64,000 nt of DNA, from the sequence record PV796108.1; one strand, 5' to 3'. Below, in pieces: positions 30,201 to 47,360 of the stretch (its first letter is position 1; each line of letters begins with the position of its first letter). Below the pieces are notes generated by a model that saw only the letters and a program-made list of their open reading frames with translations, did no database searches and was not told the origin of the DNA. Made by a program: the position numbers and the translations under genes.

Positions 30201-31171
30201 AATAGTCCAAGGTCTTTATACCATTTCATTACATCGAAACGAATATAGCCTTCGTCATTTACGAACTTCTCATATGGCATACCAAGAGGAGCAGGTGCAT
30301 ATAATGCAGAAGGTTTAGCAAGTAAGCTTTTATTCATATTGATTGCGCTAGGTATTTTGTCACCTTTAAGTACTTCTGATTTATTTACATGTGTTTTGTA
30401 AACAACAGCAACATAACGACCATATACATCTTTACGTGGTTCATGGTTTTCGATTCTATCTACATCGACTACGACAGCCCCAGAACCACTTAACATGTTG
30501 TTCATGTAGTCTCTTGCTTCTTCACCGATCTTGAATGCTTGTTCTTTTGTTACTTTATAGCGAGACATGTACCCAGCATTTCGAGTTGTACCAGATGCTT
30601 CGCCGTGGTCTTCTGTCTCAGGTGCTTGTACACCTACATAACGAATATTAATGCGTTCGCCTTTTTTAACATGTATCCCAATCCATTTACCCGTATCATA
30701 AACAACACCAGAGATTGTATCACCATCTTTTACTTTTACATCTTCTAATACAATGATACCTTCTGATACTGGAGTTTCTTCTGGCGGAGCTGCTAAAGCA
30801 CGAGCCATTAATCTAGGAGCAAATGCAGGTTCTGCTTTCTTATCTTCCCCTATTCTTCCTTGCTCATGAAATGGAGAGTTGGATTCAACAGGTAGCTTTC
30901 TAACTACGTGTGCATGTACATCTATATTCGAAACCTTACCACCTAGTTTTCTTGCGAATCCGTGGCTTCCTTCTGTTTTATTAAATAGAACGGAGATAGG
31001 ATATACTTTATTTTTTGCGGCTACTGTTGCTAAGTATTCGGACAATCTATTTCCAACAGAAACTTCGTTATATCTAAAACGAACTCTTTCTCCATCTACA
31101 TCCAGAGTAAGAAGCCAGAATGACTCTGGCTTCTCTTTCTGAACAGATAGGAGTCTCATTTCATACAACAT
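24212..31171 (-). CDS. ~2319-aa baseplate hub. Domains: N-terminal SNase/thermonuclease, two tube-like domains, degenerate SLT, gp27/gpD-like hub, hydrophobic C-terminus
   Basis: Start moved to ATG 31171 (AAAGGAGG RBS). DGDT at 30716-30727, IRYVGVQAPE and DVYGRYVAVVY give the SNase. IQSIDVHRSRKQVADTAVISMTN...RIHLRMGYG...VFNGKITE gives the hub. Confidence 0.8.
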   Translation of the reverse strand: MLYEMRLLSVQKEKPESFWLLTLDVDGERVRFRYNEVSVGNRLSEYLATVAAKNKVYPISVLFNKTEGSHGFARKLGGKVSNIDVHAHVVRKLPVESNSPFHEQGRIGEDKKAEPAFAPRLMARALAAPPEETPVSEGIIVLEDVKVKDGDTISGVVYDTGKWIGIHVKKGERINIRYVGVQAPETEDHGEASGTTRNAGYMSRYKVTKEQAFKIGEEARDYMNNMLSGSGAVVVDVDRIENHEPRKDVYGRYVAVVYKTHVNKSEVLKGDKIPSAINMNKSLLAKPSALYAPAPLGMPYEKFVNDEGYIRFDVMKWYKDLGLLKDMPDSGTVGEKLDDYFKESGKNNEEKSDLSEVKIKYDEVYDNTLDFLEPLDDRLEKMGDLQNQHRVRIGDVLLTVPPLGIQVNRTSHTERVKTLRTKGSILTKTGFSSTSINLQLYFHDLEAINGTPWKTPEGMEYTMDGLRQLIAQFQKMPFLPIDNAYINTILDIHDVALMNLSVETVPGFPHSIMANLTLAKFNSEAYMPQEVSLHDAINYPLMRWYYQRSLSKPANDAHTFLEPIAGQLTNKISFSHADEAELEQRAEAIIALREMKPINVMRMEIDAKKSELGKVIADGKKASLVLEQYDKYQRHKKNGDIKDPDDLVEGHQVFQDMYNNRSARAVFDDTEFFAPHDSEVHDIMRGKLPVDAEEGSELPGYFRKKDTFKIFLWSIPNGEELKKHKNLWVKPKSEKDAIGYFYVTETSLGALKSIVERGRRAEQMAMTEIDRYNKLSDIVYVTESKLSMIDYTIPEKDMLVTSMQVMYENIFSSAQTRTGESPTMQFLGSQDVAVKLDLELTEDGVMKLRTLVDKIDEFARHYRVGISSGFLGIENQLMKLFGVKSVMIETLNINTVPGFPGRFQGEMVLVAFNKTQRRQEELKGMSAFDGNDRDQLHSSTVDYKLQDAIIEYKMDQMEVYPDLELPTYKELNDVIEKTGAGIKEYKNKPGGVYVDPDFYASTKWTFRGEVKKQLEQRKEMKFSDSSGVHMSSNITSTDPMDVDKENMHVIEALEKKTPYVPYVFNWAEDNQGANSEKAAENATDSTGGAKGTGKPNAEVATWLKEKKNIDTPPPLDKWKTWGYGSTEADFTKWRQNVVPKPIEFYKELYSLIDGRWVKNNNVYNDKNKAEGGHTKLTYAEPEDHLKLYTQYREGKKPTDNLVALLGQDKTNGMYYKEFMPTTRARIANYLKAFFHHQSKWNGFDSMSKPYVNGTFGGIGKVDIPNFTSSVDDAQRFLWDWKYQLKVIVDDIYKFYVKARDSKEKEFEYRAWDYMLSAFYIGELKKDSIKEGAFPSIMSVWKSLYNGDKNRYRSPRQVVDPDIMKLVDGKSSHSVNVATSDKDALIKDLEDSKIIEDVIGKEKAKALLSEMKKKSSSEVKKIYESYMKMHKDGKLKGYLDQVKIPTGGNTNMLIGKWATDLLALGWSKTFGGDGSLWDQVFGDGKSQESKNYENQQKVEDIKDEEYNRLLFQQSPEEAFSQMSHNMLSYDMRGRLCRAFPTFQFFIIDEGRWMGSYRLWDNFYGFNAIQSIDVHRSRKQVADTAVISMTNVYSNLTARPTSEMYDSFAYSFWDNLVLDNPSDAVLDARSDLLNSMMLEVGARIHLRMGYGSSVRRLPTVFNGKITEMDTNDIITIVAQGDGLELTSVISGDPDDKTAKLFNAQEPRDIICKLLTSKGAWAKDVINVASENRFFRDNPLGVAHFGRPGDRTPDANFKFFNENYGEAAQNIYSANGLQTFSQWIYEDGTRIPMKWDGFILKFQGGDEDNILMPLYNQTIWDVATNISYCFPDYIAAVHPFETRSTLFFGKPYWNMAYRYDSTYAYNEKTKSWDRTLDTEHRRPYCQLHYIDDGMDIISNQIKASSDGMYTIVVGNYGGKPTPPVYADYDIDFSMQRTAVVDLPLISRTIPGWDKFTTEKQALYYSASTVRDYMKDMYKGRITILGTPTLKPHDMIYMSDSVSDMNGNIGVEAVVHHFSHETGFISSVTPDAVVVIDDKAMLAHSNWWASIGMLAGATVMGMRAGNAATRKFANSATGRTLMTKGKAAGGWIVEKSMKNLVSTLPETPETDELKKAIDSYYKAKGKEGKNEAQAWERVKNAADNVSKKAQEWLKSGGVPGKDGKIMKGTKKLAARSLLTASKLPGAMKDMKSSSKFIKGVGTFASKGTPLGWIFSLTAGWLVESLFEKWRRSKTTNQAVLMMPLMHQGKEFTAGINGHKGMVVGDTKQGSMDNFLQGLGFDGSGDGFFAAVGGFMNFMADTEASDRKFTTSYEDLDNYGQKKE

Positions 31172-31184
31172 ATGAAAACCTCCT

Positions 31185-34100
31185 TTAATATGTGAACCCT
31201 TTACCCATGACGTTTGCAAACTGTGTCTGCATCCATTCATTGTCTAACTTTTGGGTGTTATCATTTACATTCATGTTCATGTTAAGTTGAGCGCTCGTTT
31301 GATTGGACAACTCTTGGTGAACAAGTTTAGAAATATCTTGTTGAGACATTCCTTTTGCATCCTTTGCTCTAATCGAGATGTTGATGTTTTCATTCGACAT
31401 TACACGAGCAGTTGGGCCAGAAGATACTTGGACAGGAGGTGGCGGTGGTGGCGCCATTTCAGTCTGCTCTTGGAATGCTTCTGGTGTTGGACCACTTCTC
31501 ATTAAAGCTGAAGCTGCCCACATAGCACCAAATCCAATTGCTCCTCCTATCATACCTGGTCCCATCTTATGTGCTAGACCAGACATTTTTTCACCTACGG
31601 CTTCTGTTGCTCGAACAATACCTTTGTCTGCACCAATCATTTCTGTAAGAGTATTCTTACTTAGATGCGGTGTTTCAGTTATCGTATCAGCGAGAGAATC
31701 TTTTATTGCTCTGTCTCTAAACGAGAATCGCTCGGAGATGAGGTTTTCAAAGTTCTGCACGCCTTCATCATATATCTTTTTAAATTGAGGATTGTTTGCA
31801 GCGATGTTGTCTAAGTGAGGAGTTGGAACTGATTCGTATTTACCACCAGCTACAATGTTAGAAACAATTTCTGTATCCTTCGTACCACCAGATTGCATAC
31901 CCTTCAGATGAGGATTCTCAGTGAATGAATTTCCAGATAATGAATACAGGTCTTGTAATTGGTCTAAGTGTCTATCAAGACCGTAGTGGTTCATACTTTC
32001 GCCTGGATTACTTGTTTTGAAGATACCAAGTATATCATTGGCTTTTCGAATCTTCTCTACACCAACAGAGTCAGGTCGGATAACACCTTCCTTTAACATC
32101 TCAATCGCTTGGTAATGAGTTTGCATACGGCGTTCGACTTCAGTCATAACTGCATCTGCACCATGATGCTCCATTACTTTAGCAGCGTATTGGCTTTCAT
32201 CACTCGTTAATGATTTGCCCCAGCTCTTAACAATCTCTTCCGTTAAAGCACCGACACTAATCTTTTTAGAAGAAATAGAGTCCTGTGAAATCTTACTACT
32301 GAACTCTTCTAAAACATTCATAGCTTGGTATGCTTCGTCTTGAGACATCAAGCCTTTCTTAGCAAGAGCTTCATAAGTTGGGTTCGTTAGAGTTTGCATA
32401 CGTTGACGTAAGTTATCGAGTACCCCGATATCAGCTTTACCAGTACGAGCTAGTAAGCTTTCCATCTCATTGAGTCTAGTTGTTTTTGGACCCCAACCAG
32501 CTAACTCTCCAAGGTCTTGCGTCTTCTGAATGTCTCTTTGGATTTGCTCACCAACTGTAAGCTTTTCTGAGTTGTAATGCTTTAACTCATCTCCTGCCAT
32601 TTCAACAGCAGCTTGATTATAAAGTGGAACACTTCCTTGTTGAACCTCAGCCATTTCACCATGAATCGCACGAATGTCATCAATAGTATGATTCTTACTT
32701 GCTTTATAGTGGTTGAATACGGCGTTACCATTATCACCATCATGATCGGCTTTGAATACTTTTGCAGTACCAGCGCCAACATACATAACGTTTGATTCGA
32801 TTCTATCATCCACCAGATAACGAAGAACTCCATTGGTCTGTTTATTGATAGTCGGATAACGGTTCGTAAATCCATATAAACCATTTGTTTTTGCAATTTC
32901 AAGTGCTTCTTCACCCATACGTTCAGATTTAAACTGATTCGCTAAAGATTCGAGACGTTTTTTCTCTTGTCCTTTTGCTTTACCAGCTTGAGTCATTCGT
33001 TCATTGTACTCTGTAAGAATAGATTCATGACGCTTCGGAGCTAATGATTGAACGATGTCGCCTTCTGCACCTGCAATCATACGTTGCATTTGTTTCGGAC
33101 CGATTAATGCATCCCCTTCAGCCAATCCTTTCTCATGCATGTTAACCCCTTCAATGTGGAAACGACCAGACATATCCATCTTCGCAGAGTATTTATCTAG
33201 AAGTGTTCCTCCATGAGAACCAGTTACCATGTAATTCAGGTATGACTTGTATGCATCCACTGCTTGTTCAACAGCTTCTTTGTTCTCAATTGTAGGAGCA
33301 GCTTGATATGCTTTAATGTTTCTCCAGATACCAAGAGAACGTTTGTCTACTTCATTTGCCATCTCCAGTGCTTCTGGGCCAGTACCGATTTGCATCGTAC
33401 CAGGAGACATTAATCGAACGTACTTATCTTTAAACTGATGCTCACTATTACTTGGCATTTCTAGTAAGAATGTACCACCGTTTTTCTTCATAAGACTTCC
33501 GACAGTCTCATCAACACCTTCACCAAGTCCTTCGATTTGTAACTGCAAGCTTCTTGGGTCTGCAAGTGTCATTGCATAATTACCAAGTTTACCTTTCGTC
33601 ATCTCAGGGTCAGTAGCAACATTGAATTGTGGGTCACGGAATGCATGTTGAGAAATCTCTAGGTGACCATCTTTCATAACAGCTGTATGTGTACCATCTG
33701 GGTCTAAGTCAGTCATGATGTTTCCGCCTGTACGAATAACAATGTCACCATCTTGTACAACGCCTTGTTTTTGAAGAGTTGTGTTTTGGTGGTCATTGAT
33801 TGCTCGTAAGATACCAGACGTTTCTTCAGCTAGTGTCATTTCATTACTGCTGTTTTGAAGAGCAGAACGTGAGGAGATTTGTTGGCGAACGAACTTACCA
33901 ATAGTGTGGTCTTTACGATTTAAGATTTGGTCTGTACGATTGACAATGGCTTCTTGCTCTTTATATGTCCAACGTACTAAGCCAGACTTACCATCAGTAG
34001 ATACACCCATTTGGTCTTGCCATTTATGAAGGTCAGCAACTCGAAGTGTTAAGTTAACATTCTTTTCCTGACGATTAATTGGAGCAACATAATTGATAAC

Positions 34101-37100
34101 GCCAGCTTTAGCCGCAAGCTCTTCCAACATTTGAGATGATTGTTTTACGAAATCATACTCTTGTTGTAACCCATATACAGGCCCAGCGATTCGACCATGC
34201 TCTGAATTTAATACCAGCTTACCGACTGTTAAGTTGCTTCCTTGTACAGGCTCAAGTCTCATACCAATATCTGCATCTGGTATTTGGAAGATACGTTGTG
34301 TCATATCTTTAATATCTAATACGTATTTTTTAACGGCTTCATTCTTGAAGTCCATGTCAGAGTTTGTAATTAATCGGTTGGCTTCATCTACAGCTAATCG
34401 GACTTGACCTTCAATCTCCGTACCATGCATACCTTTATTGATATCACTTACAGTAACGATTGCTTTTGAATTTCCTACACCAAGTGCTTCAAAGATATCT
34501 CTATCGAAGAAGTTTGTTGTAATACGATGGTTGGCATCCGTTAAGAACTTACGTCCATTCTCTGTTTTCTCAATCATTTGAGTTTGCAGTTTACGAGTCT
34601 CTGGGTCATAACCTACAACATGGAATCCATCTCCCCATGCTTTTTCAGCTTGATAGTTTGTATTTTGACCAACACTTACTTGACCAATTGTTAATTTTCC
34701 ATGGTCAGCTTTACCTGGGTTATTCACACGACCACCAAGAATTGTTTCCAATTCAGTAGCGTTTTTCATTACATCCCCTTCAAGTCTCCATCCACCACTA
34801 TCAGTTCGAACAGAACGGAATCCATCTCTCTCCAAATCATTACCTTCAGCTTGTCTAAAGAAGTTTTCAATATCTTTGTGTAAGCTGTATCCACGTTGCA
34901 GAGTAAAGTTCTTCTCACGCTTCGTATCAAATACACTTTGTAATGACTTATCAATGATAGACATACCCTCAAATGTAGTCAGGTTCTTTTCAAATCCTTG
35001 ACCATATTTTCGAACTAGGTCTGCATATCCATCAGGATTGCTTTTTCTAAATGCATCCATTCGATCTTTAATGTCCATGTCTGTTAATTCAACAGCTTGA
35101 ACATTTAATCCTGTTAATTCTTTTTGTTTAACAACAGAACCATCAGGCATACGAATAGGAGCGCTTAAAGCTTCAGATGCAGTTGTTGTCGCAGAAGTTT
35201 GAATCATACGTTCAATCTCAACACTTGTATAGCCTTGTGCTTGTAATCGACTACGAATCTCTCTTTCTTCTAGTGGAATGTAGTTACGAGTTTTATTCAT
35301 TTGCTCACGGGCTAGGATATTGTAATGCCCAAATGCTTGATAAGCTTGCGATGTTTCTCTTGTACCGTAAATACCATTCAGTACTTGTTCACCACTCACG
35401 TTACCAGCATTTAAATACATGTTCTTTTCTCTAGATGCAAACTCTTGAATCGTACTATGGAAAGCACGTTGCTCTCTCATTCCTAAGTTCTCGAAGAATG
35501 AAGTATATGAACCAGAAGCCTTGTCTTTAATCTGTTGGTATTTGTTTTTTACGCCTAGTTCTTTTTCGAAACCATAACGTTGGTCATACCATGAATACCA
35601 TTCTTCAGCCCATCCACTTACATCTATCTTACTTCGAGCAGCACGTTGAGCTACCTGAGAACGCTTAGAGTCGTGCTTAGTAAGTTCTTTTGCATTTGTG
35701 TATGGATTATTATGTGAGAACTTTTCTGTCGCTTCACGAGCTTGTCTACGTAGTCTAGAGTGAGCTTCCTGTTCGTTACCTTTACGGATTAACTCTTTTG
35801 TAGAACCAGCACGACGAACTGCACCATCTACTAATTGTTCCAATGGAGTACCAAGAATGTCTTTACCATTCATACGCATTGCTTTTAGATAACCTGTTTT
35901 AGTAGAACCAGGCATCTGAACGTTCATGTTTTCATCCAGTAATGGAATTGGAACAGAAGCAACTTTTGCGTGTTCAATGATTTGGTTTGGCTGAAGACCC
36001 ATTACTTCTTTCATAACAGTTTCCTGCATAACAGCAAGCATGTATGTCTTCTTATGTCCATCATAGATTAATTGAGTAGCCATTCCCTCACCAGAATAAG
36101 AATGGATTAATTGTTTCACTACATCTTCAGCTTTCATCGTTTGAACGCCACGAGCAGTGTTACCACCACTGATTTGCATTAAACCATTTAAAGCTTCATC
36201 ATGTACTTGCAATGCCTTTTGGAATTTAGCGTCACTTAAATCTACAGCTTTACCTTGAGTCTTATGAGATGCTCTTCCGCTATCAATCCCTCGTCCGATG
36301 ATTTCATCTAAGATAGCAGGGTTTTTGTAAGCTTCAACTAAAGGCTTACGGATAGAACTTACATCTTTAATATCTAAGTTATGGTTTGCATAAGATGAGT
36401 TATGAGTATACTCTGCTCTCATCATACGAGCCATACTTTCAATAATCATGTACGGGCTTTCTCCGTGTTGTAGTTCAGAAACCTGACGCATTAGTTGAGA
36501 TTTCTCAGATGATGTTAACCCTGAAGCTCCTGGCCTACGAATATGATGCACAACATCTTGCAAACGTTTCTTTACAAGACCGATATCTACGCCACCATTC
36601 TTACTGATGTTCTCTTTAATATCTAATCCTTTTGTGATATAAGAACGGATATTACGAGCTGCTGTCGCATCAGTAGAAAGATCAATACGATGAGTTGTAT
36701 CACCAGGCAATTGTAATTCTAGGAATCCTTTACCGTTTGGCATTCTAATTCTTGACTCACCGCTACCATATCTCTCATCTAACTCTTGAGAAATTTTACG
36801 TAGAGCTACGTTCTGACTGAAAGGAGTAAATCCATTTACAGCTGGCATAGTAGAATCTAAACGTTGCATAGCAGTTTGCCATACTTTCTTCTCTTGCGTT
36901 AAACGTTTCTCCATTACAAGAAGGTCACGGTATTGAGAGTTTGGTAATCCAGTAGGAGTTCCGCCAACAGTACGTTGCACATTTGGATGATTCTGTACAT
37001 AGTCAGCAATATCTACTTTGCGGATTTCACCACGTTTAACTTTCTCTCTCCCTTCGTTTAATGCATCAAGAGCAGCGTACATACGCTCAAGCATCCAACG

Positions 37101-38732
37101 CCCACCACCAGATTCAGTAGTAGAGAACATCTTATCGTAAGTACGTCTTGCACGGTCTAATCCATATGCAGTTCTATTTCCAGAGTTAGGGTTTGCTAAA
37201 TGAGGAACTTCTTCTGAAGGTTTAAATACTTGATGGAATACACTTTGAAGGTCTGTCTCGCTATCTCTAGCAATGAAGTGAAATAAGTCTGTTTCTAAGT
37301 TACGAAGCAAGATACCACTTTGTTTATTCTCAGAGTTCTTTAATTTACCGCTGAATGTTTTTACAACCTCATACTCAGACTCTTTAGAGATTGGATTCAC
37401 ATTCCCTTTGTAAGCAGGGACCAACTGTTTCTTTTCTGGGTCCCAACGGAACACACCATCATTCGCTCCGCTTTCATATCCTGGCAACCCTGTCATAGAG
37501 AATAACTTATCTCCAGCTTTAATGGAGTTACTATTCCAAGTACCATTCATACGAGTACCAGCATCACTATTTACAATACCTTCTACATTTAATTTATCTA
37601 AGAATACTTTATTAGCTACGTCTACAGTTAAATCCGTATCTTGTAAAGCCATGTGAGTTGCTTGTGCGACTTCACCAGTCATTCCATAGAAGTTTGCTAG
37701 CGTTTGGTTCTTTAAGCCATGCTTAGAACTTAGGTCAGCGAATAAAGAGTTTGCAATAGATAATGTATCGAATGAGTCAGCCTTTTGAATATCAGAAGCT
37801 AAACGATTTAAAGCCATTCTAGTCTTTCTATCTTTCTTAGGTATGCTAGGAACTAACTGGTCTTTAATATAATCACGCATGAAGGGGATATCATATGTGT
37901 TAATATTTTGCCCACCTAGTTTTAATTCTTTTCCATTACGTAATGTATTCAAGAATTCTCTAGCTACTACATGCGGTTCTGTACCATGCTTTACAACATT
38001 CTCGAATCCACGTTTCGCCGCTTTGATTTGGTCATGTGTAAATAAAGTACCTTTCATAGCTTTTTGATCTTTGTTCTGTTTTAAGATGGTAGTCATGTCA
38101 CCATCTTTACGGAAGTATCCTTGTCCGAATGCATCATCTGCTCCGTATAGGATTAAGTCATTCACGGTACGTCTTTCATCATCAGACAAGTTAATGCCTG
38201 TGATATGGATTCCTTTTAGTTTTTCAAAGATATCCATTACATGCTTTTGTTCTTTCTCACCTGGCTTTACTAATAGAGAAAGAGCCTTATCTGTTTTACT
38301 AAATTGAAGTTTACCTGCGGCATCTCTTTCTACCTTTGTTTGACGGAAACCAAACTCTAGAGGTGAGTACCATTCTCCGCCATGAGTACCAATATTCTCA
38401 ATATCGAAGAACGTGAAGATATCTCCAGCCTTCATATTTTGAATCGTTTGGATTGACTTCTGAGCATGGGATTTCGTGCTTGTACTTGGGATATGGATAG
38501 ACTTAAACATATTCATTTGAGAATCAGCAGAGTTTGTCAATATCTTACCGTTGTAAGTAGCCGCTTTGAATAACTCATCAGCACCTGTTGTTCTTGGTTT
38601 CTTTTCTCGTTGAGACATTTGAGCAACAATGTATGATGGGTCAGGGTTAGTATTTTGTTTGATATAAGTATCATGAAGGGGGTCGTATTTAAACTGACCC
38701 CCATTTTTAATTCCCCCTTTATTTTCTTCCAT
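31185..38732 (-). CDS. 2515-aa putative virion single-chain two-barrel RNA polymerase with an N-terminal DEDDh 3'-5' exonuclease and a tape-measure-like C-terminus
   Basis: Exonuclease: FFDIE (D110/E112), GQNINTYD281, H360MALQD365. RNAP motifs in canonical order: TFEG(1255)MSII, GRK1395...R1403, LLDKYSAKMDMSGR, NR1958YPT, AD1996HD1998GD2000. Confidence 0.82.
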   Translation of the reverse strand: MEENKGGIKNGGQFKYDPLHDTYIKQNTNPDPSYIVAQMSQREKKPRTTGADELFKAATYNGKILTNSADSQMNMFKSIHIPSTSTKSHAQKSIQTIQNMKAGDIFTFFDIENIGTHGGEWYSPLEFGFRQTKVERDAAGKLQFSKTDKALSLLVKPGEKEQKHVMDIFEKLKGIHITGINLSDDERRTVNDLILYGADDAFGQGYFRKDGDMTTILKQNKDQKAMKGTLFTHDQIKAAKRGFENVVKHGTEPHVVAREFLNTLRNGKELKLGGQNINTYDIPFMRDYIKDQLVPSIPKKDRKTRMALNRLASDIQKADSFDTLSIANSLFADLSSKHGLKNQTLANFYGMTGEVAQATHMALQDTDLTVDVANKVFLDKLNVEGIVNSDAGTRMNGTWNSNSIKAGDKLFSMTGLPGYESGANDGVFRWDPEKKQLVPAYKGNVNPISKESEYEVVKTFSGKLKNSENKQSGILLRNLETDLFHFIARDSETDLQSVFHQVFKPSEEVPHLANPNSGNRTAYGLDRARRTYDKMFSTTESGGGRWMLERMYAALDALNEGREKVKRGEIRKVDIADYVQNHPNVQRTVGGTPTGLPNSQYRDLLVMEKRLTQEKKVWQTAMQRLDSTMPAVNGFTPFSQNVALRKISQELDERYGSGESRIRMPNGKGFLELQLPGDTTHRIDLSTDATAARNIRSYITKGLDIKENISKNGGVDIGLVKKRLQDVVHHIRRPGASGLTSSEKSQLMRQVSELQHGESPYMIIESMARMMRAEYTHNSSYANHNLDIKDVSSIRKPLVEAYKNPAILDEIIGRGIDSGRASHKTQGKAVDLSDAKFQKALQVHDEALNGLMQISGGNTARGVQTMKAEDVVKQLIHSYSGEGMATQLIYDGHKKTYMLAVMQETVMKEVMGLQPNQIIEHAKVASVPIPLLDENMNVQMPGSTKTGYLKAMRMNGKDILGTPLEQLVDGAVRRAGSTKELIRKGNEQEAHSRLRRQAREATEKFSHNNPYTNAKELTKHDSKRSQVAQRAARSKIDVSGWAEEWYSWYDQRYGFEKELGVKNKYQQIKDKASGSYTSFFENLGMREQRAFHSTIQEFASREKNMYLNAGNVSGEQVLNGIYGTRETSQAYQAFGHYNILAREQMNKTRNYIPLEEREIRSRLQAQGYTSVEIERMIQTSATTTASEALSAPIRMPDGSVVKQKELTGLNVQAVELTDMDIKDRMDAFRKSNPDGYADLVRKYGQGFEKNLTTFEGMSIIDKSLQSVFDTKREKNFTLQRGYSLHKDIENFFRQAEGNDLERDGFRSVRTDSGGWRLEGDVMKNATELETILGGRVNNPGKADHGKLTIGQVSVGQNTNYQAEKAWGDGFHVVGYDPETRKLQTQMIEKTENGRKFLTDANHRITTNFFDRDIFEALGVGNSKAIVTVSDINKGMHGTEIEGQVRLAVDEANRLITNSDMDFKNEAVKKYVLDIKDMTQRIFQIPDADIGMRLEPVQGSNLTVGKLVLNSEHGRIAGPVYGLQQEYDFVKQSSQMLEELAAKAGVINYVAPINRQEKNVNLTLRVADLHKWQDQMGVSTDGKSGLVRWTYKEQEAIVNRTDQILNRKDHTIGKFVRQQISSRSALQNSSNEMTLAEETSGILRAINDHQNTTLQKQGVVQDGDIVIRTGGNIMTDLDPDGTHTAVMKDGHLEISQHAFRDPQFNVATDPEMTKGKLGNYAMTLADPRSLQLQIEGLGEGVDETVGSLMKKNGGTFLLEMPSNSEHQFKDKYVRLMSPGTMQIGTGPEALEMANEVDKRSLGIWRNIKAYQAAPTIENKEAVEQAVDAYKSYLNYMVTGSHGGTLLDKYSAKMDMSGRFHIEGVNMHEKGLAEGDALIGPKQMQRMIAGAEGDIVQSLAPKRHESILTEYNERMTQAGKAKGQEKKRLESLANQFKSERMGEEALEIAKTNGLYGFTNRYPTINKQTNGVLRYLVDDRIESNVMYVGAGTAKVFKADHDGDNGNAVFNHYKASKNHTIDDIRAIHGEMAEVQQGSVPLYNQAAVEMAGDELKHYNSEKLTVGEQIQRDIQKTQDLGELAGWGPKTTRLNEMESLLARTGKADIGVLDNLRQRMQTLTNPTYEALAKKGLMSQDEAYQAMNVLEEFSSKISQDSISSKKISVGALTEEIVKSWGKSLTSDESQYAAKVMEHHGADAVMTEVERRMQTHYQAIEMLKEGVIRPDSVGVEKIRKANDILGIFKTSNPGESMNHYGLDRHLDQLQDLYSLSGNSFTENPHLKGMQSGGTKDTEIVSNIVAGGKYESVPTPHLDNIAANNPQFKKIYDEGVQNFENLISERFSFRDRAIKDSLADTITETPHLSKNTLTEMIGADKGIVRATEAVGEKMSGLAHKMGPGMIGGAIGFGAMWAASALMRSGPTPEAFQEQTEMAPPPPPPVQVSSGPTARVMSNENINISIRAKDAKGMSQQDISKLVHQELSNQTSAQLNMNMNVNDNTQKLDNEWMQTQFANVMGKGFTY

Positions 38733-38744
38733 CCCAATTCCTCC

Positions 38745-41700
38745 TTAGTTAAATACTTTTGTCCAGTTCGTATTCAACTCCTGAATAATCTCACTGGTTC
38801 TATCTTTCATCATGTCGAAACCGACACTAATTATATTGTCATCTTTAGATGGTGAACGTTGAACGGTTACCTGTACATCATCTAGACCTGCTCCTCGAAG
38901 GACTTTCTCAATTCTAGATGAGTTAATCATGTCTCCCATTAAACGTGGTTGCATATCAACAGCATCAACGCCAGAAGCATCTGCTCTCGTTTCATCACTA
39001 CCCCAGAACCCAAACTCTGTAAGTTCCATACCTTCATTACGAACAACCTTTAATTTAATGTCATTCAATGCGGTATCTGCACGCCATCCTTCCCAGTTCT
39101 CACTAGGTAGATAATGCTTTTTAAAGTAGGATTCATTGCTCTCTACTTTATCCATCTTCATTCCCCACTTAGCTTGGAAGAAGCGACGTTCATTTTCAGG
39201 AACAAGTCGAAGGATTTCCTCCCTTTCTTCAGGAGCAGCCTTCATGAATTCTGCAAAGTACTCTCTATCTTTTTTCGGTAGAGAACGGAAAATTTTTGTC
39301 ATGTCACCATTTGGGTCAGCCCCGAATAATGTTGACTCATATTCCGCTTTGTATTGAAGAGCTAGTAACGTATGTGGCCCAATATCAACACTACTTCTAT
39401 CCTCACCAATCGTTTTCAGATTGTCACGGATACGTTTCAATTGGAACTCTGTAAGCTCATCATCACCATAACCCATTTTTTTCTGCATTGCCAATTGTTT
39501 TTTGTAAAGTTCTAGCGTTTTACGAGATTGCTTATTCTGCTTACCACGCTTACTATTCTCGTCCAGAAGTTCTTTTAAATCTACACCTTCTGTACGTTTC
39601 GCTTCTTCAGCTGCTTTCTCATATAAACCTTTGAACTTCATGTATTTCAAACGGTCAAAGTACTCGTTAACTTCCCTTTCCTTCTTACGTCTTTCTGGTA
39701 ACCAAACTTTATCATTGCCAGGAGTGTGTTCACTTAATACTCGAAGAGCCGCCGCCCCACCGCCTACTAAAGCACCAATCCATTTACCATAATATTTACC
39801 TTTACCTCGTCCAGCTAACCAACCAATACCATAACCTTGAGCACTTGCAATTAATGGATTACGAGAAGCCATTGTTTCAATCATAGGTTGTAACCATCCA
39901 GAGATAGGTTCTTCCCATGGTCTCCACGCTTTACCATAGACTTCAGTACGTTTGTATTGTTCTAATGGAGAACGAACTTGTAAGAACTTATCAGCGATAG
40001 GACCGATGATAGGTAAGCTTGGTAATAAGTCATGGCTCAAGAACTCCCATGCTTTACCGACAGTAATTTGGTCATTACTGAATAATGCTTGTGTAGCAGT
40101 TGCACTACCATCATCTTTCACACTTACTTTATTGTCTCCACCAATACCCATAATTCCACCGAAGGAACGATTCGCTAACATGTAGTTGACGTTCTGACCT
40201 TTTTGAGTCATGTAGAACGGCATACCTTCTTCACTATTTCCAGCGTATACAACAGCACGCATTGTATTCATCATGTCATCACGGACACGGAATAGTGGGT
40301 CGGCATCTAATCCTACTCGAATCTTCGCACCTTCATAAACGAACTGACGTAATAAAGACTGAGCTTCTTCATCATCTTGCTTGATAGATACACCAGCTAG
40401 TTTAATAGGGTTATTCGGGAACTCTTCTGTTAAGAATGTATTCTGGTCAAGAATCTTCGTAACAGTTACATCCTGCATATCAATGTCAGCATTTGTGAAT
40501 CGTTTATCAAAGAATTGGTATTTCTTTTTACGTTCACGTACTTGCGTCATTACTTCTTGATACTCATCATTCATCTCTTCTGTTAAACGACCATCTTGGT
40601 TCATTTGGGAAACAACACGTTTCCACATACGATACTGGTCAGAGTATGGAGCAACGTCAGCTAAGATACGGAATCTATCGAATGCACCGTACTTGCTTCC
40701 ATCTTCTTGAGAGAACTCATCTGGATGTAGCTTGTATAAAGATTCATAAGCTTCACCAGGAAGTCTCATTTCACCTTTACTTACTTTTACATAAGGGTCA
40801 CCGTATTTAAATGGTAGGAAGTATTCCGCACCAGGCATCCAGTCTGGCATTGTGTTTCGAATTGGATTGTAGTAATTTTTATTCGGGTCACGAGGAATAT
40901 AACGACGGAAAATCTCGGAGAATCCGCCACCAACCATATCGGCTCCACCTAGCTCCATATCCCAGAAGCTACGAGCCATACTATCCATACGAGAACTTGG
41001 CTCAAGTGTTAATCCACGTCCACCCTCTTGGAATCCAGATAGTGCTTTTGTACCGAAACCGTAGATACCAAGAACCTCAGATGCAGAGTAGAACATATCA
41101 CGAGCTACACCAGATGGATTACCAATCTCACCGATGTCAGCTAAGTCTGCTAGTGCTTCAGGGTCACGTAAGCTTTCTAATTGAGTTAAAGGTCTCATCT
41201 TAGATTGGTTAACTGCTGCTTGACCTCTCATGATGATACGTTGGTTAATTGCTGCTAAAGAAGCACTGGAGTAATCTCCTGTTCCAACCATTCGTTCAGT
41301 TCCTTCAATAGCAACGCCACCTTCAGAACTAGAACCACCACCAAGACCAATGGCACCGCCAGCACCTGAACCATAACCTTCTTCATATCCACCATCACCA
41401 GAAGGCATATCTTCATATACTTGAAGCCCACCAGCTGGCATTAACTGAATACTAGCACCTTCACTATATGCATCAAAACGTCTACTAGATGCTGCAATTA
41501 CTTCATCTTGATAACGTTCATGTTGTTCTTGTAAGTCTGCTCTTACAGTACGTGGAGAAATGATTCGCCCAATTGTATTATCTGCAAGTGGACCGACAAT
41601 AGGGAAGTCAGATAGGATTGTTCCACCTTTAATTGGGTAAGGTCTGTCATCTTCATGCTTCTTTTCTAGATAACTATGACCATTTAACATGTAAGTTAAT

Positions 41701-44700
41701 GGAGCTATTGGATTTGATAATGTAGGAATCCAAGTGTTTGCCCAGTAATCATTTGCACTTCCATAAAGCGTATCAGTGTATTCATAATCACTCTTCGCTT
41801 TACGATACCAGTTTGGTTCCCATCTCTCGATCTTTCCACCAGCCCAAGGAGTATTCGAACCTAGACCCCAGTAACGACCTTTACGTACAGCATCTTCACC
41901 AGATTCATAGTACTTATCTACTTCCTTTTCTGAACGAAAATCAGAGAATGCACCAAGTGTTAAGAAGTCGAATGCCTTTAAGAATGGTAGTTCACCTAAT
42001 TGCCCAGCACCTGCAAATGGAGCAGTTAGTTCTTTACCAATACGATTAATACCAAGTGCTTCTTTTACACCAGCTAAGTCGCCATGCATATTTACATACG
42101 TATCAGCTAGGCTATCACTTACTGTATCTCCAGTCATATCATCAAGGTACTCTAACTCTTTGTAAGCTACATAAGGAAGTAAGATACGTTTCCCTAATTG
42201 GTTTACAAGAATACTTTGCATACTACCTTTGTCTTTTTGAGCAAGACCTAATCCTACTTTGGATAACGCATTATCCATACGTTCAACACCGTAATAGAAG
42301 AATGTAGTAGCTGTCGTTACATCACCAAGGTTATTACGACCAGCGAATGGTTGCTTTACTACTTCTTTCGCACTATTAAGAAATGCAGATACAGAGTTAG
42401 AACCTTCTTCAATTAATTGATTGTAGTTCTCTTGCGCCCATCCAATTCCTTTTGCATCTCGCATGATACCGTAACCTGTTGTCGGTCCGAAATAGTTCGG
42501 CGGTTTCATACCTGGCCCAGTACTTGTTAATGGATTGAACTCTTTAATGCTCTGATGGATAGCTTGACCAAATACACTGTCATCGCCTTTCATCAACCCA
42601 GCGAATTCTTCTAATGCATCGTCACCATACGTATTACGATTACGATAAACATCTTTCCACCATGTACGCATTTTAGAAAGGACTTCCATATTACGTACTT
42701 CACCTAATGCATTTTTCTCTAAATCACCTTCTAGGATTGCATTTCGAACAAGACGGCTTGTACCCTCTGTTGTCATATTGACTTGGTGAATAGAGTGTTG
42801 TTGAATTAAACGTTTTGCATCATCTAAAATACCAACTAATTCTGTTTCACCTGTTTCTAATGCAGAAGCAAACTCAGGAAGAACAGCGCCGTTGTCACTA
42901 GAGATACGCTTATTCTTTAAGAAGCCTTGAGGGGAACGACTAAACTTCGTCCACATTTCATCTAATTGTTCAGCTAATGCCGTATTACCTTTAGAGATTT
43001 TACCATCGAACTCAGGAGAACCAATGGCTTGTCGTAAACGTCCTACTGCACCCATGATTTCATCTGTTGTATTTAATTTTGTTAAATCAATATCAACGTT
43101 CCCATATGCTTTCTTTACATGTGGGTTTAAGAAATCAATTGTTGTACTAGAGAAGTTTGTTGTCTTTTCATTAAATGAACTATATAGGTTCTTATAGATA
43201 CCTTCTACTTCATCTAAATCCTTGTACTGACCTTTCATCATTGTACGAACTTGGTTAATCTCCCAGTCAGGGTCTTTAAATTTCGTAAACATACTCTTGA
43301 TGTTAGCGAAGCTAGATGGGGATTCTTGCATTCCAAATCCAAAGAAGTTCTTTACTGGACCAACATCATCATAGTTTCGTACGTGTAAGTTAGCCATGCT
43401 TGCTGGCATACGGCTGAATACACCGAATCGTCTATCGGCTAGGTAGACACCCTCATCTACTTTATTCATATCATGCATACGGTATACATTTCCACCAACA
43501 AAGATATGGTCGTCTGCTAATGTACCAGCTGCCGCATCTCTATTATGAGCCGCAGGATGCTGTACTGTTCGTGCTCCTTGTAAGAACGGGTCAATATCTC
43601 CACGTTTTAATACGTAGCTTTTAGGAGCTTCACGAATTGTTTTAATACTAGAATAGTGAGCAAGGTCTAATGGGTTGAATCGTAGATATGGTAATTGCAC
43701 ATTGTCTTTTACAATATCAAGGAAGTTTAATCCGCCATCAATACTGTTACGCATATCAACAACGTTACCTGATTTATCTAAGAATAAGCCTGGGTCTACA
43801 TGTAGGTCTCCTAGTTCACTATCAGACTTCATATGGATACGGAAGTTGTTTGCTAAGTTCTTTGGAGCCATCTTGCTAGCTTTTTCTAATGGAACTAAAA
43901 AGTCTGAACTGTCTTGGTCAATCAAACCTCTGTTTAATGTTTCCTTTAATGTCAGTGGTTTTAAACCTCGGCGTTGAGCAGCTTCCATCCATTTACCATT
44001 CTTGTCAACTGAGTGGTCATCCTTGAATGCTTTTACACGGAGGTCACGATATTCTTTGTAGTTCTTTTTCGCAACATCCTTTACATTCTTATCCTTCTTA
44101 ACCGCTGTCATCGTTTGGTAAACTGTCTCTGCTGTTTTCTTACGTTCTAACTCATCAACAAAGTCTAATGCATTACTGATGTTATTCTTTTTCGCATTCT
44201 CTTTTGAATGCATTTTTAATAACTCGTCTACCTTTTTAAGAGACGGAGCTTCATAGAATAAGTCATCACGTTTTTGACGAAGGACATTTTCTAGTCCGCC
44301 TTCCTTCATTCTCTCAGGGAGAACAGAACTTAGTCGTTTCATTGTCTCTTCAAACTGAGTAGAACGTACAAAGTCTTTACGTTCCTTTTGAAGACCCTTC
44401 ATCATAGACAGATATTCATTTTGAATCTTCGTTGGTTTTCCACCAAGAGGAGTTCGTGCCATACGCATTCTCTCTTCTTGCAGGTCTTTAAATGTACGAG
44501 TAAAACGATTATCGAATCTATCCTTATTTCTCATATGGAATAGAGGATTCTTTTGATCTAATGCATGGTCTAATGATTTTAAATATGAACCTACTTCACC
44601 CATTGCATTGCCTACAGGAGTATTGCGGGCTGACATTTTAGCAGCTTGAATAGCGGCTCCTCTCATAGCCATACTAGATTCATGTGTAACTACCTTGATT

Positions 44701-44822
44701 CCTTTACCGATTGCTCGTCTATATTTATAACCTAGTGCTGCACCACCTACTATACCTGCAAGCTCTAAAGGACTGGAACCTTCTTGCTCTGGTAAGGGCT
44801 GGCGTCCAGTTTGCTCTGCCAT
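38745..44822 (-). CDS. Tape measure protein (2025 aa) containing a degenerate SNase-like fold
   Basis: Lies immediately after the tail chaperones; long and mostly helical, with Gly/Ala-rich hydrophobic segments (LAGIVGGAALG; WIGALVGGGAAAL). Confidence 0.75.
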   Translation of the reverse strand: MAEQTGRQPLPEQEGSSPLELAGIVGGAALGYKYRRAIGKGIKVVTHESSMAMRGAAIQAAKMSARNTPVGNAMGEVGSYLKSLDHALDQKNPLFHMRNKDRFDNRFTRTFKDLQEERMRMARTPLGGKPTKIQNEYLSMMKGLQKERKDFVRSTQFEETMKRLSSVLPERMKEGGLENVLRQKRDDLFYEAPSLKKVDELLKMHSKENAKKNNISNALDFVDELERKKTAETVYQTMTAVKKDKNVKDVAKKNYKEYRDLRVKAFKDDHSVDKNGKWMEAAQRRGLKPLTLKETLNRGLIDQDSSDFLVPLEKASKMAPKNLANNFRIHMKSDSELGDLHVDPGLFLDKSGNVVDMRNSIDGGLNFLDIVKDNVQLPYLRFNPLDLAHYSSIKTIREAPKSYVLKRGDIDPFLQGARTVQHPAAHNRDAAAGTLADDHIFVGGNVYRMHDMNKVDEGVYLADRRFGVFSRMPASMANLHVRNYDDVGPVKNFFGFGMQESPSSFANIKSMFTKFKDPDWEINQVRTMMKGQYKDLDEVEGIYKNLYSSFNEKTTNFSSTTIDFLNPHVKKAYGNVDIDLTKLNTTDEIMGAVGRLRQAIGSPEFDGKISKGNTALAEQLDEMWTKFSRSPQGFLKNKRISSDNGAVLPEFASALETGETELVGILDDAKRLIQQHSIHQVNMTTEGTSRLVRNAILEGDLEKNALGEVRNMEVLSKMRTWWKDVYRNRNTYGDDALEEFAGLMKGDDSVFGQAIHQSIKEFNPLTSTGPGMKPPNYFGPTTGYGIMRDAKGIGWAQENYNQLIEEGSNSVSAFLNSAKEVVKQPFAGRNNLGDVTTATTFFYYGVERMDNALSKVGLGLAQKDKGSMQSILVNQLGKRILLPYVAYKELEYLDDMTGDTVSDSLADTYVNMHGDLAGVKEALGINRIGKELTAPFAGAGQLGELPFLKAFDFLTLGAFSDFRSEKEVDKYYESGEDAVRKGRYWGLGSNTPWAGGKIERWEPNWYRKAKSDYEYTDTLYGSANDYWANTWIPTLSNPIAPLTYMLNGHSYLEKKHEDDRPYPIKGGTILSDFPIVGPLADNTIGRIISPRTVRADLQEQHERYQDEVIAASSRRFDAYSEGASIQLMPAGGLQVYEDMPSGDGGYEEGYGSGAGGAIGLGGGSSSEGGVAIEGTERMVGTGDYSSASLAAINQRIIMRGQAAVNQSKMRPLTQLESLRDPEALADLADIGEIGNPSGVARDMFYSASEVLGIYGFGTKALSGFQEGGRGLTLEPSSRMDSMARSFWDMELGGADMVGGGFSEIFRRYIPRDPNKNYYNPIRNTMPDWMPGAEYFLPFKYGDPYVKVSKGEMRLPGEAYESLYKLHPDEFSQEDGSKYGAFDRFRILADVAPYSDQYRMWKRVVSQMNQDGRLTEEMNDEYQEVMTQVRERKKKYQFFDKRFTNADIDMQDVTVTKILDQNTFLTEEFPNNPIKLAGVSIKQDDEEAQSLLRQFVYEGAKIRVGLDADPLFRVRDDMMNTMRAVVYAGNSEEGMPFYMTQKGQNVNYMLANRSFGGIMGIGGDNKVSVKDDGSATATQALFSNDQITVGKAWEFLSHDLLPSLPIIGPIADKFLQVRSPLEQYKRTEVYGKAWRPWEEPISGWLQPMIETMASRNPLIASAQGYGIGWLAGRGKGKYYGKWIGALVGGGAAALRVLSEHTPGNDKVWLPERRKKEREVNEYFDRLKYMKFKGLYEKAAEEAKRTEGVDLKELLDENSKRGKQNKQSRKTLELYKKQLAMQKKMGYGDDELTEFQLKRIRDNLKTIGEDRSSVDIGPHTLLALQYKAEYESTLFGADPNGDMTKIFRSLPKKDREYFAEFMKAAPEEREEILRLVPENERRFFQAKWGMKMDKVESNESYFKKHYLPSENWEGWRADTALNDIKLKVVRNEGMELTEFGFWGSDETRADASGVDAVDMQPRLMGDMINSSRIEKVLRGAGLDDVQVTVQRSPSKDDNIISVGFDMMKDRTSEIIQELNTNWTKVFN

Positions 44823-44837
44823 TTAATTCACTCCTTT

Positions 44838-45359
44838 CTAGAATGGGTGATGATGCTGTTGTTCTTTATCTTCTTCTAACTTAACTCCTCGAAGAACTTC
44901 TAATGTCCATTTAGCACGAGAATAGTACCACATTGTTTTCTCTAATCCCCAGTTGTCAATCTCTTCTAATTCAAACTCAGGGAAACAGAACTTAATAATA
45001 CAAGATACTTGATTCTCGAAGCTTCTCATGTCTGCATCAAACTTCATCTCAAGTTCTTTCATTAAATTATTGTCTTTACCGAATCCTGCTTTCTTCAGAA
45101 TTTCTTGACCGACAACGTTTGGAACCCCAGCAGGTAATGATTCTGTATCATCAATTACAGGGTCTAGTAAACATATTCTACAGATTTCATCGTACTTGTC
45201 TGTTTCAAATTCTATTGGAGCAATTCTTTCTTTAAACTCTTTACGAGATAATGGTCGCCATACATATGCATCATCTTCAAACTCTGTCACATATACTTCC
45301 ATGTATTCTTTTATCCATTCATCTCTAATGCGTAAGTACTCTGTTATGTCTTTTGTCAT
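44838..45359 (-). CDS. Tail assembly chaperone, GT-like (G-like domain plus C-terminal extension)
   Basis: YVWRPLSRKEF...AGVPNVVGQEILKKAGF is paralogous to the upstream chaperone, with an extra C-terminal domain; precedes the tape measure gene. Confidence 0.7.
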   Translation of the reverse strand: MTKDITEYLRIRDEWIKEYMEVYVTEFEDDAYVWRPLSRKEFKERIAPIEFETDKYDEICRICLLDPVIDDTESLPAGVPNVVGQEILKKAGFGKDNNLMKELEMKFDADMRSFENQVSCIIKFCFPEFELEEIDNWGLEKTMWYYSRAKWTLEVLRGVKLEEDKEQQHHHPF

Positions 45360-45377
45360 TGTGTTCTCCTCCCAAAT

Positions 45378-45404
45378 AAAAAAGAGAGGGGATTTCCCCC
45401 TCTC
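45378..45404 (-). terminator. Intrinsic terminator between the two chaperone genes
   Basis: GAGAGGGG-GAAAT-CCCCTCTC followed by TTTTTTATTT. Confidence 0.85.
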
Positions 45405-45419
45405 CCCTTATTATATTTC

Positions 45420-46671: not shown

Positions 46672-46699
46672 TTTATACCTCCTTTTCCTTATCACCGTT

Positions 46700-46729
46700 A
46701 TCGTAACGATTCGTTTCGTTAAAAGTCAA
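46700..46729 (-). promoter_or_regulatory. sigmaA-like promoter TTGACT-N18-TACGAT; the -10 overlaps an inverted repeat CGTTA-tcg-TAACG
   Basis: -35 at 46724-46729 and -10 at 46700-46705, in the only gap between tube genes 2 and 3. Confidence 0.5.
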
Positions 46730-46736
46730 GCGTTTA

Positions 46737-47309: not shown

Positions 47310-47324
47310 ACTGCTTCCTCCCTA

Positions 47325-47350: not shown

Positions 47351-47360
47351 CCTCTTGAGT

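Follow-up and report, generated by a model that had tools for sequence, protein, structure and literature searches.

A predicted N-terminal DEDDh exonuclease conserved together with a putative RNA polymerase barrel in giant tail-module proteins of Bacillus jumbo phages and their relatives

What is a 3'-5' exonuclease doing at the N-terminus of a putative phage RNA polymerase, and on which 3' ends would it act? The question is raised by a 2515-aa protein encoded in a 64,000-nt stretch of sequence record PV796108.1 (the window), which a sequence-only reading had described as a DEDDh exonuclease fused to a two-barrel polymerase. The gene has a ribosome-binding site, AAGGAGG, 7 nt upstream of its ATG, and it is identical to gene GAKEdson_0920 of Bacillus phage Edson, whose public label is 'hypothetical'. 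It is part of a structural/tail module and stands between two other giant genes:

31185..38732, minus strand: the whole gene, an uninterrupted ORF for the 2515-aa putative giant virion protein
38745..44822, minus strand: upstream partner, a 2025-aa protein in tape-measure position after two chaperone-like genes
24212..31240, minus strand: downstream partner, a 2342-aa protein that combines an SNase domain with a cell-wall-hydrolase region (start at 31171 in the public record)

The gene order runs from sheath and tube paralogues through the chaperone-like genes, the 2025-aa gene, the 2515-aa gene and the 2342-aa lysin to the baseplate. The order around the 2515-aa gene recurs in three distant relatives (L003, L005 and L008), the last of which has the same giant trio with a Hydrolase_2 giant in the position of the downstream partner. 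The counterpart in phage WH1, gp095, is 97% identical and labelled 'virion structural protein', and a relative in KLEB27-3, gp034, is labelled 'structural protein'; a literature search found no publication behind either label. Its assignment to the virion comes from database annotation only and is inconclusive. Matches by tblastn among 50,697 phage records were confined to Edson, WH1 and KLEB27-3. No relative turned up among single genomes of 185,579 bacterial and archaeal species, which gives no sign of prophage copies. In searches that also took in both giant neighbours, Pfam and PHROGs recognised no domain in the N-terminus or the whole protein, and Pfam found neither of the two domains discussed below, no other effector domain and no peptidase family in seven family members.

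The exonuclease motifs that had been read from the sequence (FFD110IE112, GGQNINTYD281IPF, DTLSIA and TH360MALQD365) are all in the translation of 31185..38732 on the minus strand as described. The domain had been placed at 37620-38410, which does span Exo I to Exo III, but the modelled fold is wider:

37569..38471, minus strand: DEDDh 3'-5' exonuclease domain, aa ~88-388, from AF2 model, Foldseek and hhalign
38397..38411, minus strand: Exo I motif FFD110IE112 (FFDIE, aa 108-112)
37983..38207, minus strand: family-specific insert of ~75 residues in the exonuclease fold, aa ~176-250, an unaligned block in hhalign
38142..38180, minus strand: invariant D185-E-R-R-T-x-N-D-L-I-L-Y motif inside the insert
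37881..37916, minus strand: Exo II motif GGQN276INTYD281IPF, aa 273-284, GGQNINTYDIPF
37752..37769, minus strand: D322-T motif DTLSIA, aa 322-327, at the end of strand beta5
37638..37658, minus strand: Exo III motif TH360MALQD365, aa 359-365

Since Exo III has the form H-x4-D, with His and not Tyr, the domain belongs to the DEDDh subclass. Its AF2 model (pLDDT 73, pTM 0.75) shows the canonical order of strands and helices, with the D-x-E of Exo I in the strand at 105-115. Searched with this model, Foldseek returned RNase T as all of its best 9 matches (E 2e-4, prob 1.0; TM 0.56 on the target for a predicted structure), followed by ERI1, ISG20 and RNase AS. An exonuclease profile run against 1.84 billion representative proteins matched ~25 small proteins with E-values of 5e-7 to 1e-3, and all 10 of the 10 tested were Pfam RNase_T (PF00929). 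Alignment by hhalign with 17 bona fide Pfam RNase_T proteins gave 99.5% probability (E 9e-23) and brought all four motifs into register, with Exo II paired to GHNI..FD, Exo III to aH.AL.D and D322-T to the DT column. This bears out the membership of the DnaQ/RNase T superfamily that had been assigned from motifs. Neither the 450-aa N-terminus nor the complete protein had a Pfam match at E<=1, and since the PF00929 gathering score was not reached, we place the exonuclease in a divergent branch of the superfamily outside the Pfam family as drawn. Against PDB sequences, phmmer of the N-terminus found no match. The exonuclease profile found nothing significant there, its best matches being ~190-aa chains deposited as 'exodeoxyribonuclease III', and the full-length profile of seven sequences gave only a sub-threshold match to Exo II (D222) of RB69 polymerase, and no polymerase; these weak matches, at E 0.3-0.45, are not significant.

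On profile, predicted-fold and motif evidence, aa ~88-388 is a DEDDh exonuclease of the RNase T/DnaQ superfamily. It shares the fold order, the five residues and the DT motif with E. coli RNase T and PF00929, oligoribonuclease, ERI1, ISG20 and DnaQ epsilon. It differs from the RNase T type in length (~300 versus ~200 residues) and in the conserved 75-residue insert with its R-R-T, and it sits in a 2515-aa chain whereas RNase T is a free dimeric enzyme. The best reading of the intact catalytic residues, all five of which are present, is that the domain is predicted to be active.

Conservation was assessed in 81 full-length representatives clustered at 50% identity, with counts that rest on segment alignments. 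D110, E112, N276, D281, D322, H360 and D365 are invariant in seven homologues at ~30% identity, and in the larger set the five catalytic residues D-E-D-H-D are kept together in 79/81. Taken singly, the D-x-E of Exo I is found in 79/81 after four misalignments were resolved, D281 in 81/81, N276 in 75/81, D322 in 80/81, H360 in 78/81 and D365 in 80/81. The D185-E-R-R-T motif of the insert forms invariant columns in the seven homologues and is conserved in part across the 81. This pattern leads us to reject chance motif matches and a dead exonuclease domain. In ~80 proteins of 2100-2860 aa the exonuclease invariably occupies the N-terminus (aa ~55-450), even where family identity falls to 13-30%. 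Stand-alone versions of the exonuclease, 325-373 aa long, also occur, on contigs of ~1.2 kb without gene context.

The second module lies far downstream in the chain and is followed by a hydrophobic segment:

32013..34415, minus strand: polymerase module as modelled, aa 1440-2240 (AF2 pLDDT 79.9)
32733..32864, minus strand: beta'-type catalytic barrel core, from NRYPT (aa 1957-1961) to DHDGD (aa 1996-2000)
32403..32450, minus strand: bridge-helix-like segment, aa 2095-2110, conserved and on a long helix of the model, ARTGKADIGVLDNLRQ
31500..31562, minus strand: Gly/Ala-rich hydrophobic segment, aa 2391-2411, GPGMIGGAIGFGAMWAASALM
31434..31451, minus strand: poly-Pro run after the Gly/Ala-rich segment and before the conserved C-terminal ~90 aa

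The model of aa 1440-2240 had 222 Foldseek matches in the PDB at E<=1e-3, and the best 50 of these were all RNA polymerase largest-subunit chains (beta', Rpb1-type/Pol I largest subunit, plastid), with prob 1.0 over ~290 columns. Fold matches in BFVD were viral RNA polymerase subunits. A region-specific profile matched phiKZ gp55 (E 8.6e-5) and AR9 beta' (E 5e-3) exactly on the NRYPT-DHDGD stretch, the only significant PDB sequence matches that it gave. By hhalign the barrel core pairs with NRAPT..NADFDGD of E. coli RpoC; NRYPT 1957-1961 falls on NRAPT in E. coli beta' and, in the phiKZ gp55 match, on NRNPT. R1958, P1960, D1996, D1998 and D2000 are kept in 67/69 representatives. This combination of profile and model evidence supports a beta'-type catalytic barrel of a putative cellular-type RNA polymerase. 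The segment at aa 2095-2110, which we take to resemble the beta' 'GARKG' segment, has conserved A2095, R/K2096, K2099, G2103 and N2107 in the pattern A-R-x-G-K-x3-G-x2-D-N (aa 2095-2107); the correspondence of aa 2095-2107 with the bridge helix comes from visual comparison only and is inconclusive.

Of the two barrels proposed for this enzyme, the beta'-type catalytic one is thus upheld and the second is something we infer. The model is rich in beta structure at aa ~1664-1877, and in the aligned sequences K/R1591 (52/52), E1592 (46/52) and a DMSGRF..NP motif are conserved. The hhalign comparison of the polymerase-region profile with E. coli RpoB gave no real match, and no beta chain is among the best 50 of the 222 Foldseek matches. 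Since the second, beta-type barrel has neither a sequence nor a fold match, 'two-barrel' is used here in a putative sense. An 822-aa right-arm ORF of WH1 was considered as a separate non-virion polymerase and rejected; it starts with a Rho_N/SAP-like region and lacks a DxDxD motif.

Proofreading DNA polymerases characteristically carry a fused DEDD exonuclease, and a two-barrel DNA polymerase exists in archaeal PolD (PMC7281927, PMC10770324). The 2515-aa protein could then be a DNA polymerase or primer extender that repairs or completes the entering genome. The position two residues ahead of the first Asp in the DHDGD triad would fit: it is Lys, and variable in the family, where cellular beta' has the Asn of NADFDGD. 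In cellular enzymes this Asn makes the ribose contact. We regard this reading as very improbable, given that the only significant sequence matches are the phiKZ and AR9 RNA polymerase subunits and that RNA polymerases make up the fold matches listed (the best 50 of 222, and BFVD). The gene also lies in the tail module, away from replication genes, and the exonuclease of PolD is of the Mre11 type, not DEDDh.

The exonuclease had been called an N-terminal fusion to the polymerase, and its position is right, but the two modules are not adjacent: between exonuclease and catalytic barrel lie ~1,550-1,600 residues without assigned function. The two modules are conserved together. DxDGD occurs as a single copy in the same relative place in 72/81 representatives and as a DxDxD variant in 7 more, and these 79, with the motif at 78-80% of the length, are the same 79 that keep D-E-D-H-D. 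The survey of homologues that the sequence-only reading had called for thus finds both domains together in 79/81. That reading had also named what would count against it, a fold that is not RNase H-like or a domain that is inactive and not conserved with the polymerase core. Neither was found, since the AF2 model matches RNase T and the exonuclease shows no degeneration and is retained along with the core. A word-indexed search from the polymerase side, of low sensitivity for exonuclease-less relatives, returned family members only.

This fixed layout bears on whether the exonuclease serves counter-defence or host shutoff independently, as an effector that rides with the polymerase in a polyvalent injected protein. 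Such a protein is known in N4-like phages, whose ejected giant virion RNA polymerase is fused to other enzymatic domains (metallopeptidase, ART, lysozyme or RNase; PMC5512222), and many enzymes that target nucleotide signals are found in jumbo phages (PMC7824862). The long spacer between the modules also fits independent action, and the targets might be linear oligonucleotide signals, nanoRNAs, or the 3' ends of tRNA or small RNA. Cyclic signals are excluded because DEDDh enzymes require a free 3' end. The N4 polymerase has a T7-like right-hand fold and partner domains that vary by phage (PMC5512222), whereas the partner here is fixed. Polyvalent proteins are variable and shuffled, but no such shuffling is seen among the 81 representatives, 79 of which have the same layout and domain position over deep divergence, and Pfam found no other effector domain in the seven members. 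The architecture of exonuclease plus polymerase is fixed, unlike that of the polyvalent injected proteins (PMC5512222), and we consider the independent-effector explanation quite unlikely.

Our favoured explanation, at about even odds, is a virion RNA polymerase that is ejected and carries an active exonuclease working in cis, with the 3' ends of nascent RNA as the substrate that we prefer. The 2515-aa protein would be built into the tail together with both giant neighbours and ejected before or with the phage DNA. The C-terminal hydrophobic segment, which falls below a strict Kyte-Doolittle transmembrane threshold (aa 2391-2411), may hold it at the membrane, where it would transcribe the first phage genes as crAss phi14:2 gp66 and P23-45 gp96 do. 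The exonuclease would act on free 3'-OH ends in cis with the polymerase, its favoured substrate being the 3' ends of backtracked, misincorporated, abortive or terminated transcripts, and in doing so it could replace Gre/TFIIS-type cleavage factors. The substrate is the most conjectural of these steps; the sequence-only reading had named several roles and chosen none of them. Against an RNA-editing role stand the RNA cleavage that two-barrel polymerases perform within their own active site, the lack of an obvious demand for fidelity in a virion enzyme whose early transcripts are few, and the long spacer between the two modules.

The DEDDh domain might more specifically be a dedicated editing site that receives product 3' ends from the polymerase centre, in the manner of a proofreading DNA polymerase; we think this rather unlikely, and its extreme form would be a virion-delivered proofreading DNA polymerase. 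A functional parallel is coronavirus nsp14 ExoN, a DEDDh exonuclease that serves RNA synthesis by nsp12 and removes nucleotides from the 3' end of the product strand. This is an analogy and not a homology of systems: the nsp12 polymerase has a right-hand fold, its exonuclease is a separate protein and its template is RNA, whereas the 2515-aa protein unites exonuclease and putative two-barrel fold in one chain, presumably with DNA as template.

The exonuclease could instead act on DNA 3' ends, either trimming or resecting the entering genome end, whereby a single-stranded promoter or template would be exposed or a 3' overhang removed, or attacking host DNA ends beside the SNase of the neighbouring protein. 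Both ssDNA and RNA are substrates of RNase T-type enzymes, and the nearest solved structures in Foldseek are RNase T with ssDNA bound. The best PDB sequence matches also point to DNA enzymes (RB69 DNA polymerase and the 'exodeoxyribonuclease III' chains) but at the non-significant E-values given above. If ejected through the tail, the 2515-aa protein would probably meet the DNA end first. Because the neighbouring giant, an ejected-type protein, carries an SNase domain, the nucleases of the trio could be host-directed effectors. Resection in the 3'-5' direction would leave a 5'-ended single strand that the polymerase would read towards the genome end, so it should be of no help to transcription-coupled entry, and a nuclease against host DNA does not need the one-to-one coupling to a polymerase seen in ~79 clusters. 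We judge a DNA substrate, with both versions taken together, unlikely.

The favoured role, that of an ejected RNA polymerase, has precedents. Few ejected single-chain two-barrel RNA polymerases are known, and the precedents, crAss gp66 (2021) and P23-45 gp96 (2024), are recent finds (PMC10770324). P23-45 gp96, for which transcription of pre-early genes at the entry pore has been proposed, is likewise a giant protein of the tail module; it has one DxDGD-type motif, is missed by standard polymerase searches and has a hydrophobic segment elsewhere in the chain (PMC10770324). Its polymerase is N-terminal, where that of the 2515-aa protein lies at 60-90% of the chain, and it shares its chain with a true, metallopeptidase-bearing tape measure; the gp96 paper mentions no DEDDh exonuclease such as the 2515-aa protein carries at its N-terminus (PMC10770324). 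In the 2515-aa protein Pfam and PHROGs found no metallopeptidase, and the tape-measure position is held by the separate 2025-aa gene, which leads us to reject a tape-measure-fused polymerase of the gp96 type. The crAss-like phi14:2 gp66 (PDB 6VR4; cited in PMC10770324) is a single-chain virion protein of ~2200 aa encoded beside other giant virion genes, with a two-barrel polymerase related to QDE-1/YonO; it is a cargo protein of a podovirus, whereas the 2515-aa protein comes from a jumbo myophage. The full-length profile against the PDB showed no similarity to gp66 and matched no RNA polymerase chain, and no description of an exonuclease domain in gp66 was found in the literature searched. Single-chain DxDGD polymerases of Firmicute phages also include YonO and orf99 of 0305phi8-36, the latter from a Bacillus jumbo myophage like the source phage (PMC2147016, PMC2919709, PMC7824862). 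These are ~800 aa, non-structural and recognised by the Pfam RdRP family, unlike the structural, Pfam-invisible 2515-aa protein, which has no tblastn match in 0305phi8-36.

The architecture had been thought novel-looking, and the literature search agrees, with nothing relevant found on a DEDDh domain paired with a virion polymerase and no earlier description found of an exonuclease paired with a cellular-type RNA polymerase. Nor was a counterpart of the obligate N-terminal DEDDh exonuclease found in any two-barrel polymerase. The family would form a third, sequence-unrelated lineage beside crAss gp66 and P23-45 gp96. It is common in metagenomes, with ~80 clusters at 50% identity, and it marks an annotation gap in which Pfam and PHROGs are blind to it and public records say 'hypothetical' or 'structural protein'. 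Since three isolated Bacillus jumbo phages (Edson, WH1 and KLEB27-3) carry the gene, the lineage is open to bench study. If the exonuclease acts on DNA or on host RNA, it would be a new first step in jumbo-phage takeover. If it edits or trims the transcript, cellular-type RNA polymerases can use a separate proofreading site, and a dedicated editing site would be without precedent in the RNA polymerase/PolD superfamily.

The feature analysed here is a single uninterrupted open reading frame:

31185..38732, minus strand: target ORF, 2515 aa

It starts 12 nt past the upstream gene's stop codon, with an AAGGAGG site 7 nt ahead of the ATG. The sequence-only reading had taken its product for a DEDDh exonuclease fused N-terminally to a putative RNA polymerase, and the motifs on which it relied are found in the translation at the residues quoted (D110/E112, D281, DTLSIA at 322-327, H360/D365), as are NRYPT at 1957 and DHDGD at 1996.

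The N-terminus retrieved nothing from Pfam (E<=1), from PHROGs or in a phmmer search of the PDB. We aligned seven homologues over aa 61-420 (~30% identity), among which D110, E112, N276, D281, D322, H360 and D365 are invariant, and scored the resulting profile against 1.84 billion representative proteins. Among the 119 matches, ~80 are 2100-2860 aa long and carry the domain at aa ~55-450, while ~25 are proteins of 107-311 aa matched over the Exo II-Exo III half (E 5e-7 to 1e-3); all 10 of the small proteins tested belong to Pfam RNase_T (E 1e-33 to 2.5e-7). Alignment of the family against 17 RNase_T proteins with hhalign gave a probability of 99.5% (E 9e-23) and placed Exo I, Exo II, the DT motif and Exo III all in register, with a block of ~75 residues (aa ~176-250) unaligned. 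An AlphaFold2 model of the domain (pLDDT 73, pTM 0.75) follows the canonical strand and helix order and puts the catalytic residues on the expected elements. In the PDB it most closely resembles nine RNase T chains (E 2e-4, probability 1.0, TM 0.56 on the target), with weaker matches that include ERI1, ISG20 and RNase AS. Because profile, hhalign and model evidence agree with RNase T, the DEDDh identification holds, and with it a predicted RNase H-like fold. The domain forms a divergent branch, and its conserved insert bears an invariant D-E-R-R-T-x-N-D-L-I-L-Y motif.

Two proteins of 325 and 373 aa, on metagenome contigs of ~1.2 kb (L011, 170-1147; L012, 9-1130), match nearly the entire exonuclease profile, insert included. 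They are called as complete genes, so stand-alone or split forms of the domain may exist, although coverage is low and the contigs lack context. An 875-aa protein (P0056; L013, 13-2640) has a different architecture, with a related exonuclease domain placed C-terminally at aa 530-804.

For the downstream module, a full-length profile found no polymerase in the PDB. A profile of aa 1440-2240, built from an 18-sequence alignment, matched gp55 of phiKZ, a subunit of the non-virion polymerase (E 8.6e-5), and the beta' subunit of AR9 (E 5e-3), in both cases exactly over NRxPT...DxDGD, and hhalign against E. coli RpoC selected NRAPT...NADFDGD. When this region was modelled with AlphaFold2 (pLDDT 79.9), a fold search gave 222 hits in the PDB at E<=1e-3, the best 50 of which are all beta'/Rpb1-type chains with probability 1.0. 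Against a viral library, the model matched giant-virus and jumbo-phage RNA polymerase subunits, together with a 'minor tail protein' from a siphovirus (690 columns). That the target is instead a proofreading DNA polymerase, a reading to which its exonuclease lends itself, is very improbable beside these matches. Of 69 representatives, 67 keep R1958, P1960, D1996, D1998 and D2000. A conserved A-R-x-G-K...G...N segment (2095-2107) lies within a long helix of the model and resembles a bridge helix, and residues ~1664-1877 are beta-rich in the model, with a conserved K/R1591-E1592 and a DMSGRF motif. As to a second, beta-type barrel, hhalign with the polymerase-region profile gave no RpoB match. 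The C-terminus of the protein consists of a Gly/Ala-rich hydrophobic segment, which falls below the strict transmembrane threshold, a proline run and a conserved end of ~90 residues.

The two modules have been kept together. A quick alignment was made of 81 full-length representatives (pairwise identity <=50%); D281 is present in 81/81, D365 in 80/81 and H360 in 78/81, and the complete D-E-D-H-D set in 75. Four of the six exceptions are misaligned and do have an FDIET-type Exo I; the other two, P0072 and P0079, are different proteins, which leaves 79 genuine members. DxDGD occurs as a single copy at 78-80% of chain length in 72 of the 81 representatives, and DxDxD variants occupy the same place in 7 more. 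Both modules, in identical order, are therefore found in all 79 genuine members, each with a predicted catalytic set and a DxDxD-type motif, and neither of the outcomes that would have told against the sequence-only reading, a fold that is not RNase H-like or an inactive domain not conserved with the polymerase core, is borne out in this family.

The window corresponds to positions 62001-126000 of Bacillus phage Edson (PV796108), a 233.8-kb phage isolated on B. cereus BC102p, where the public record labels every gene 'hypothetical protein'. All window ORFs of at least 150 aa lie on the minus strand and GC skew is negative in nearly all 2-kb bins, as expected of a single long late transcription unit. 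The region is a tail and head structural module, ordered sheath, three tube-like paralogues, two chaperone-like genes, giants of 2025, 2515 and 2342 aa, then lysin and baseplate genes:

45931..47936, minus strand: three tandem paralogues of ~190-250 aa, adjoining the sheath gene and matching phrog_9206
44838..45905, minus strand: two adjacent small genes sharing phrog_29368, 'tail chaperonin' in WH1
38745..44822, minus strand: upstream giant, 2025 aa, in the tape-measure position directly after the two chaperone-like genes
24212..31240, minus strand: downstream giant, 2342 aa, with an SNase domain and an endolysin-like C-terminal region

PHROGs names phrog_9206 'major head protein', a label that appears misleading here since the equivalents in KLEB27-3 are annotated as tail tube proteins. 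The small-gene pair may be a G/GT-type chaperone pair. For the 2025-aa giant, Pfam and PHROGs returned nothing, BLASTP found no resemblance to either of the other giants, and no stretch of the protein is strongly hydrophobic. The ORF of the 2342-aa giant starts at 31240, overlapping the target stop by 56 nt (31171 in the public record). Residues 198-287 of this giant form a staphylococcal-nuclease domain (Pfam SNase, E 9e-6) and the last ~750 aa match phrog_20474 'endolysin' (E 1e-216), which makes it a nuclease carried by an apparent tail-tip lysin or hub.

In a tblastn search of 50,697 phage records, the N-terminal 450 residues of the target matched Edson (100% identity), vB_BceM_WH1 (97%) and vB_BauM_KLEB27-3, isolated on Bacillus australimaris sKR4M-27 (27%), and no other phage, and no relative was found in bacterial or archaeal genomes of 185,579 species. 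The giant-gene trio recurs in a 251-kb IMG/VR contig, a 241-kb metagenome contig and a distant JGI contig, in which the third giant bears Hydrolase_2. The target homologue is labelled 'virion structural protein' in WH1 and 'structural protein' in KLEB27-3; literature searches found no published source for these labels. The right arm of WH1 (L009, 25885-28353) also encodes an 822-aa ORF labelled 'hypothetical protein_xxxxx', isolated amid numerous tiny early-type genes, which lacks polymerase motifs and whose DNA-binding N-terminus is of a Rho_N/SAP-like kind (Pfam E 5.7e-6).

An exonuclease of the DEDD type linked to a two-barrel polymerase is described neither in a jumbo-phage survey, a survey of polyvalent proteins (PMC5512222) and the P23-45 paper (PMC10770324) nor in anything retrieved by full-text literature searches, and within that literature the architecture is undescribed. 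In 0305phi8-36 the sole polymerase is YonO-like and non-structural. Precedents for the target are crAss phi14:2 gp66 and P23-45 gp96, the latter a DFDGD-bearing polymerase fused to a tape measure, which transcribes pre-early genes and for which a position at the entry pore has been proposed (PMC10770324). By analogy to gp66 and gp96, the target is most likely an ejected virion RNA polymerase.

Action of the exonuclease on DNA ends, whether of the phage or of the host, is unlikely. Still a little less probable is an independent host-directed effector, an idea kept alive by the SNase domain in the adjoining 2342-aa giant. In N4-type polyvalent proteins the partner domains are shuffled (PMC5512222), whereas in the target family the position and catalytic residues of the exonuclease are fixed across deep divergence, which argues that it works together with the polymerase. 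We tentatively favour a role in which the exonuclease of this putative virion RNA polymerase would trim nascent RNA 3' ends.
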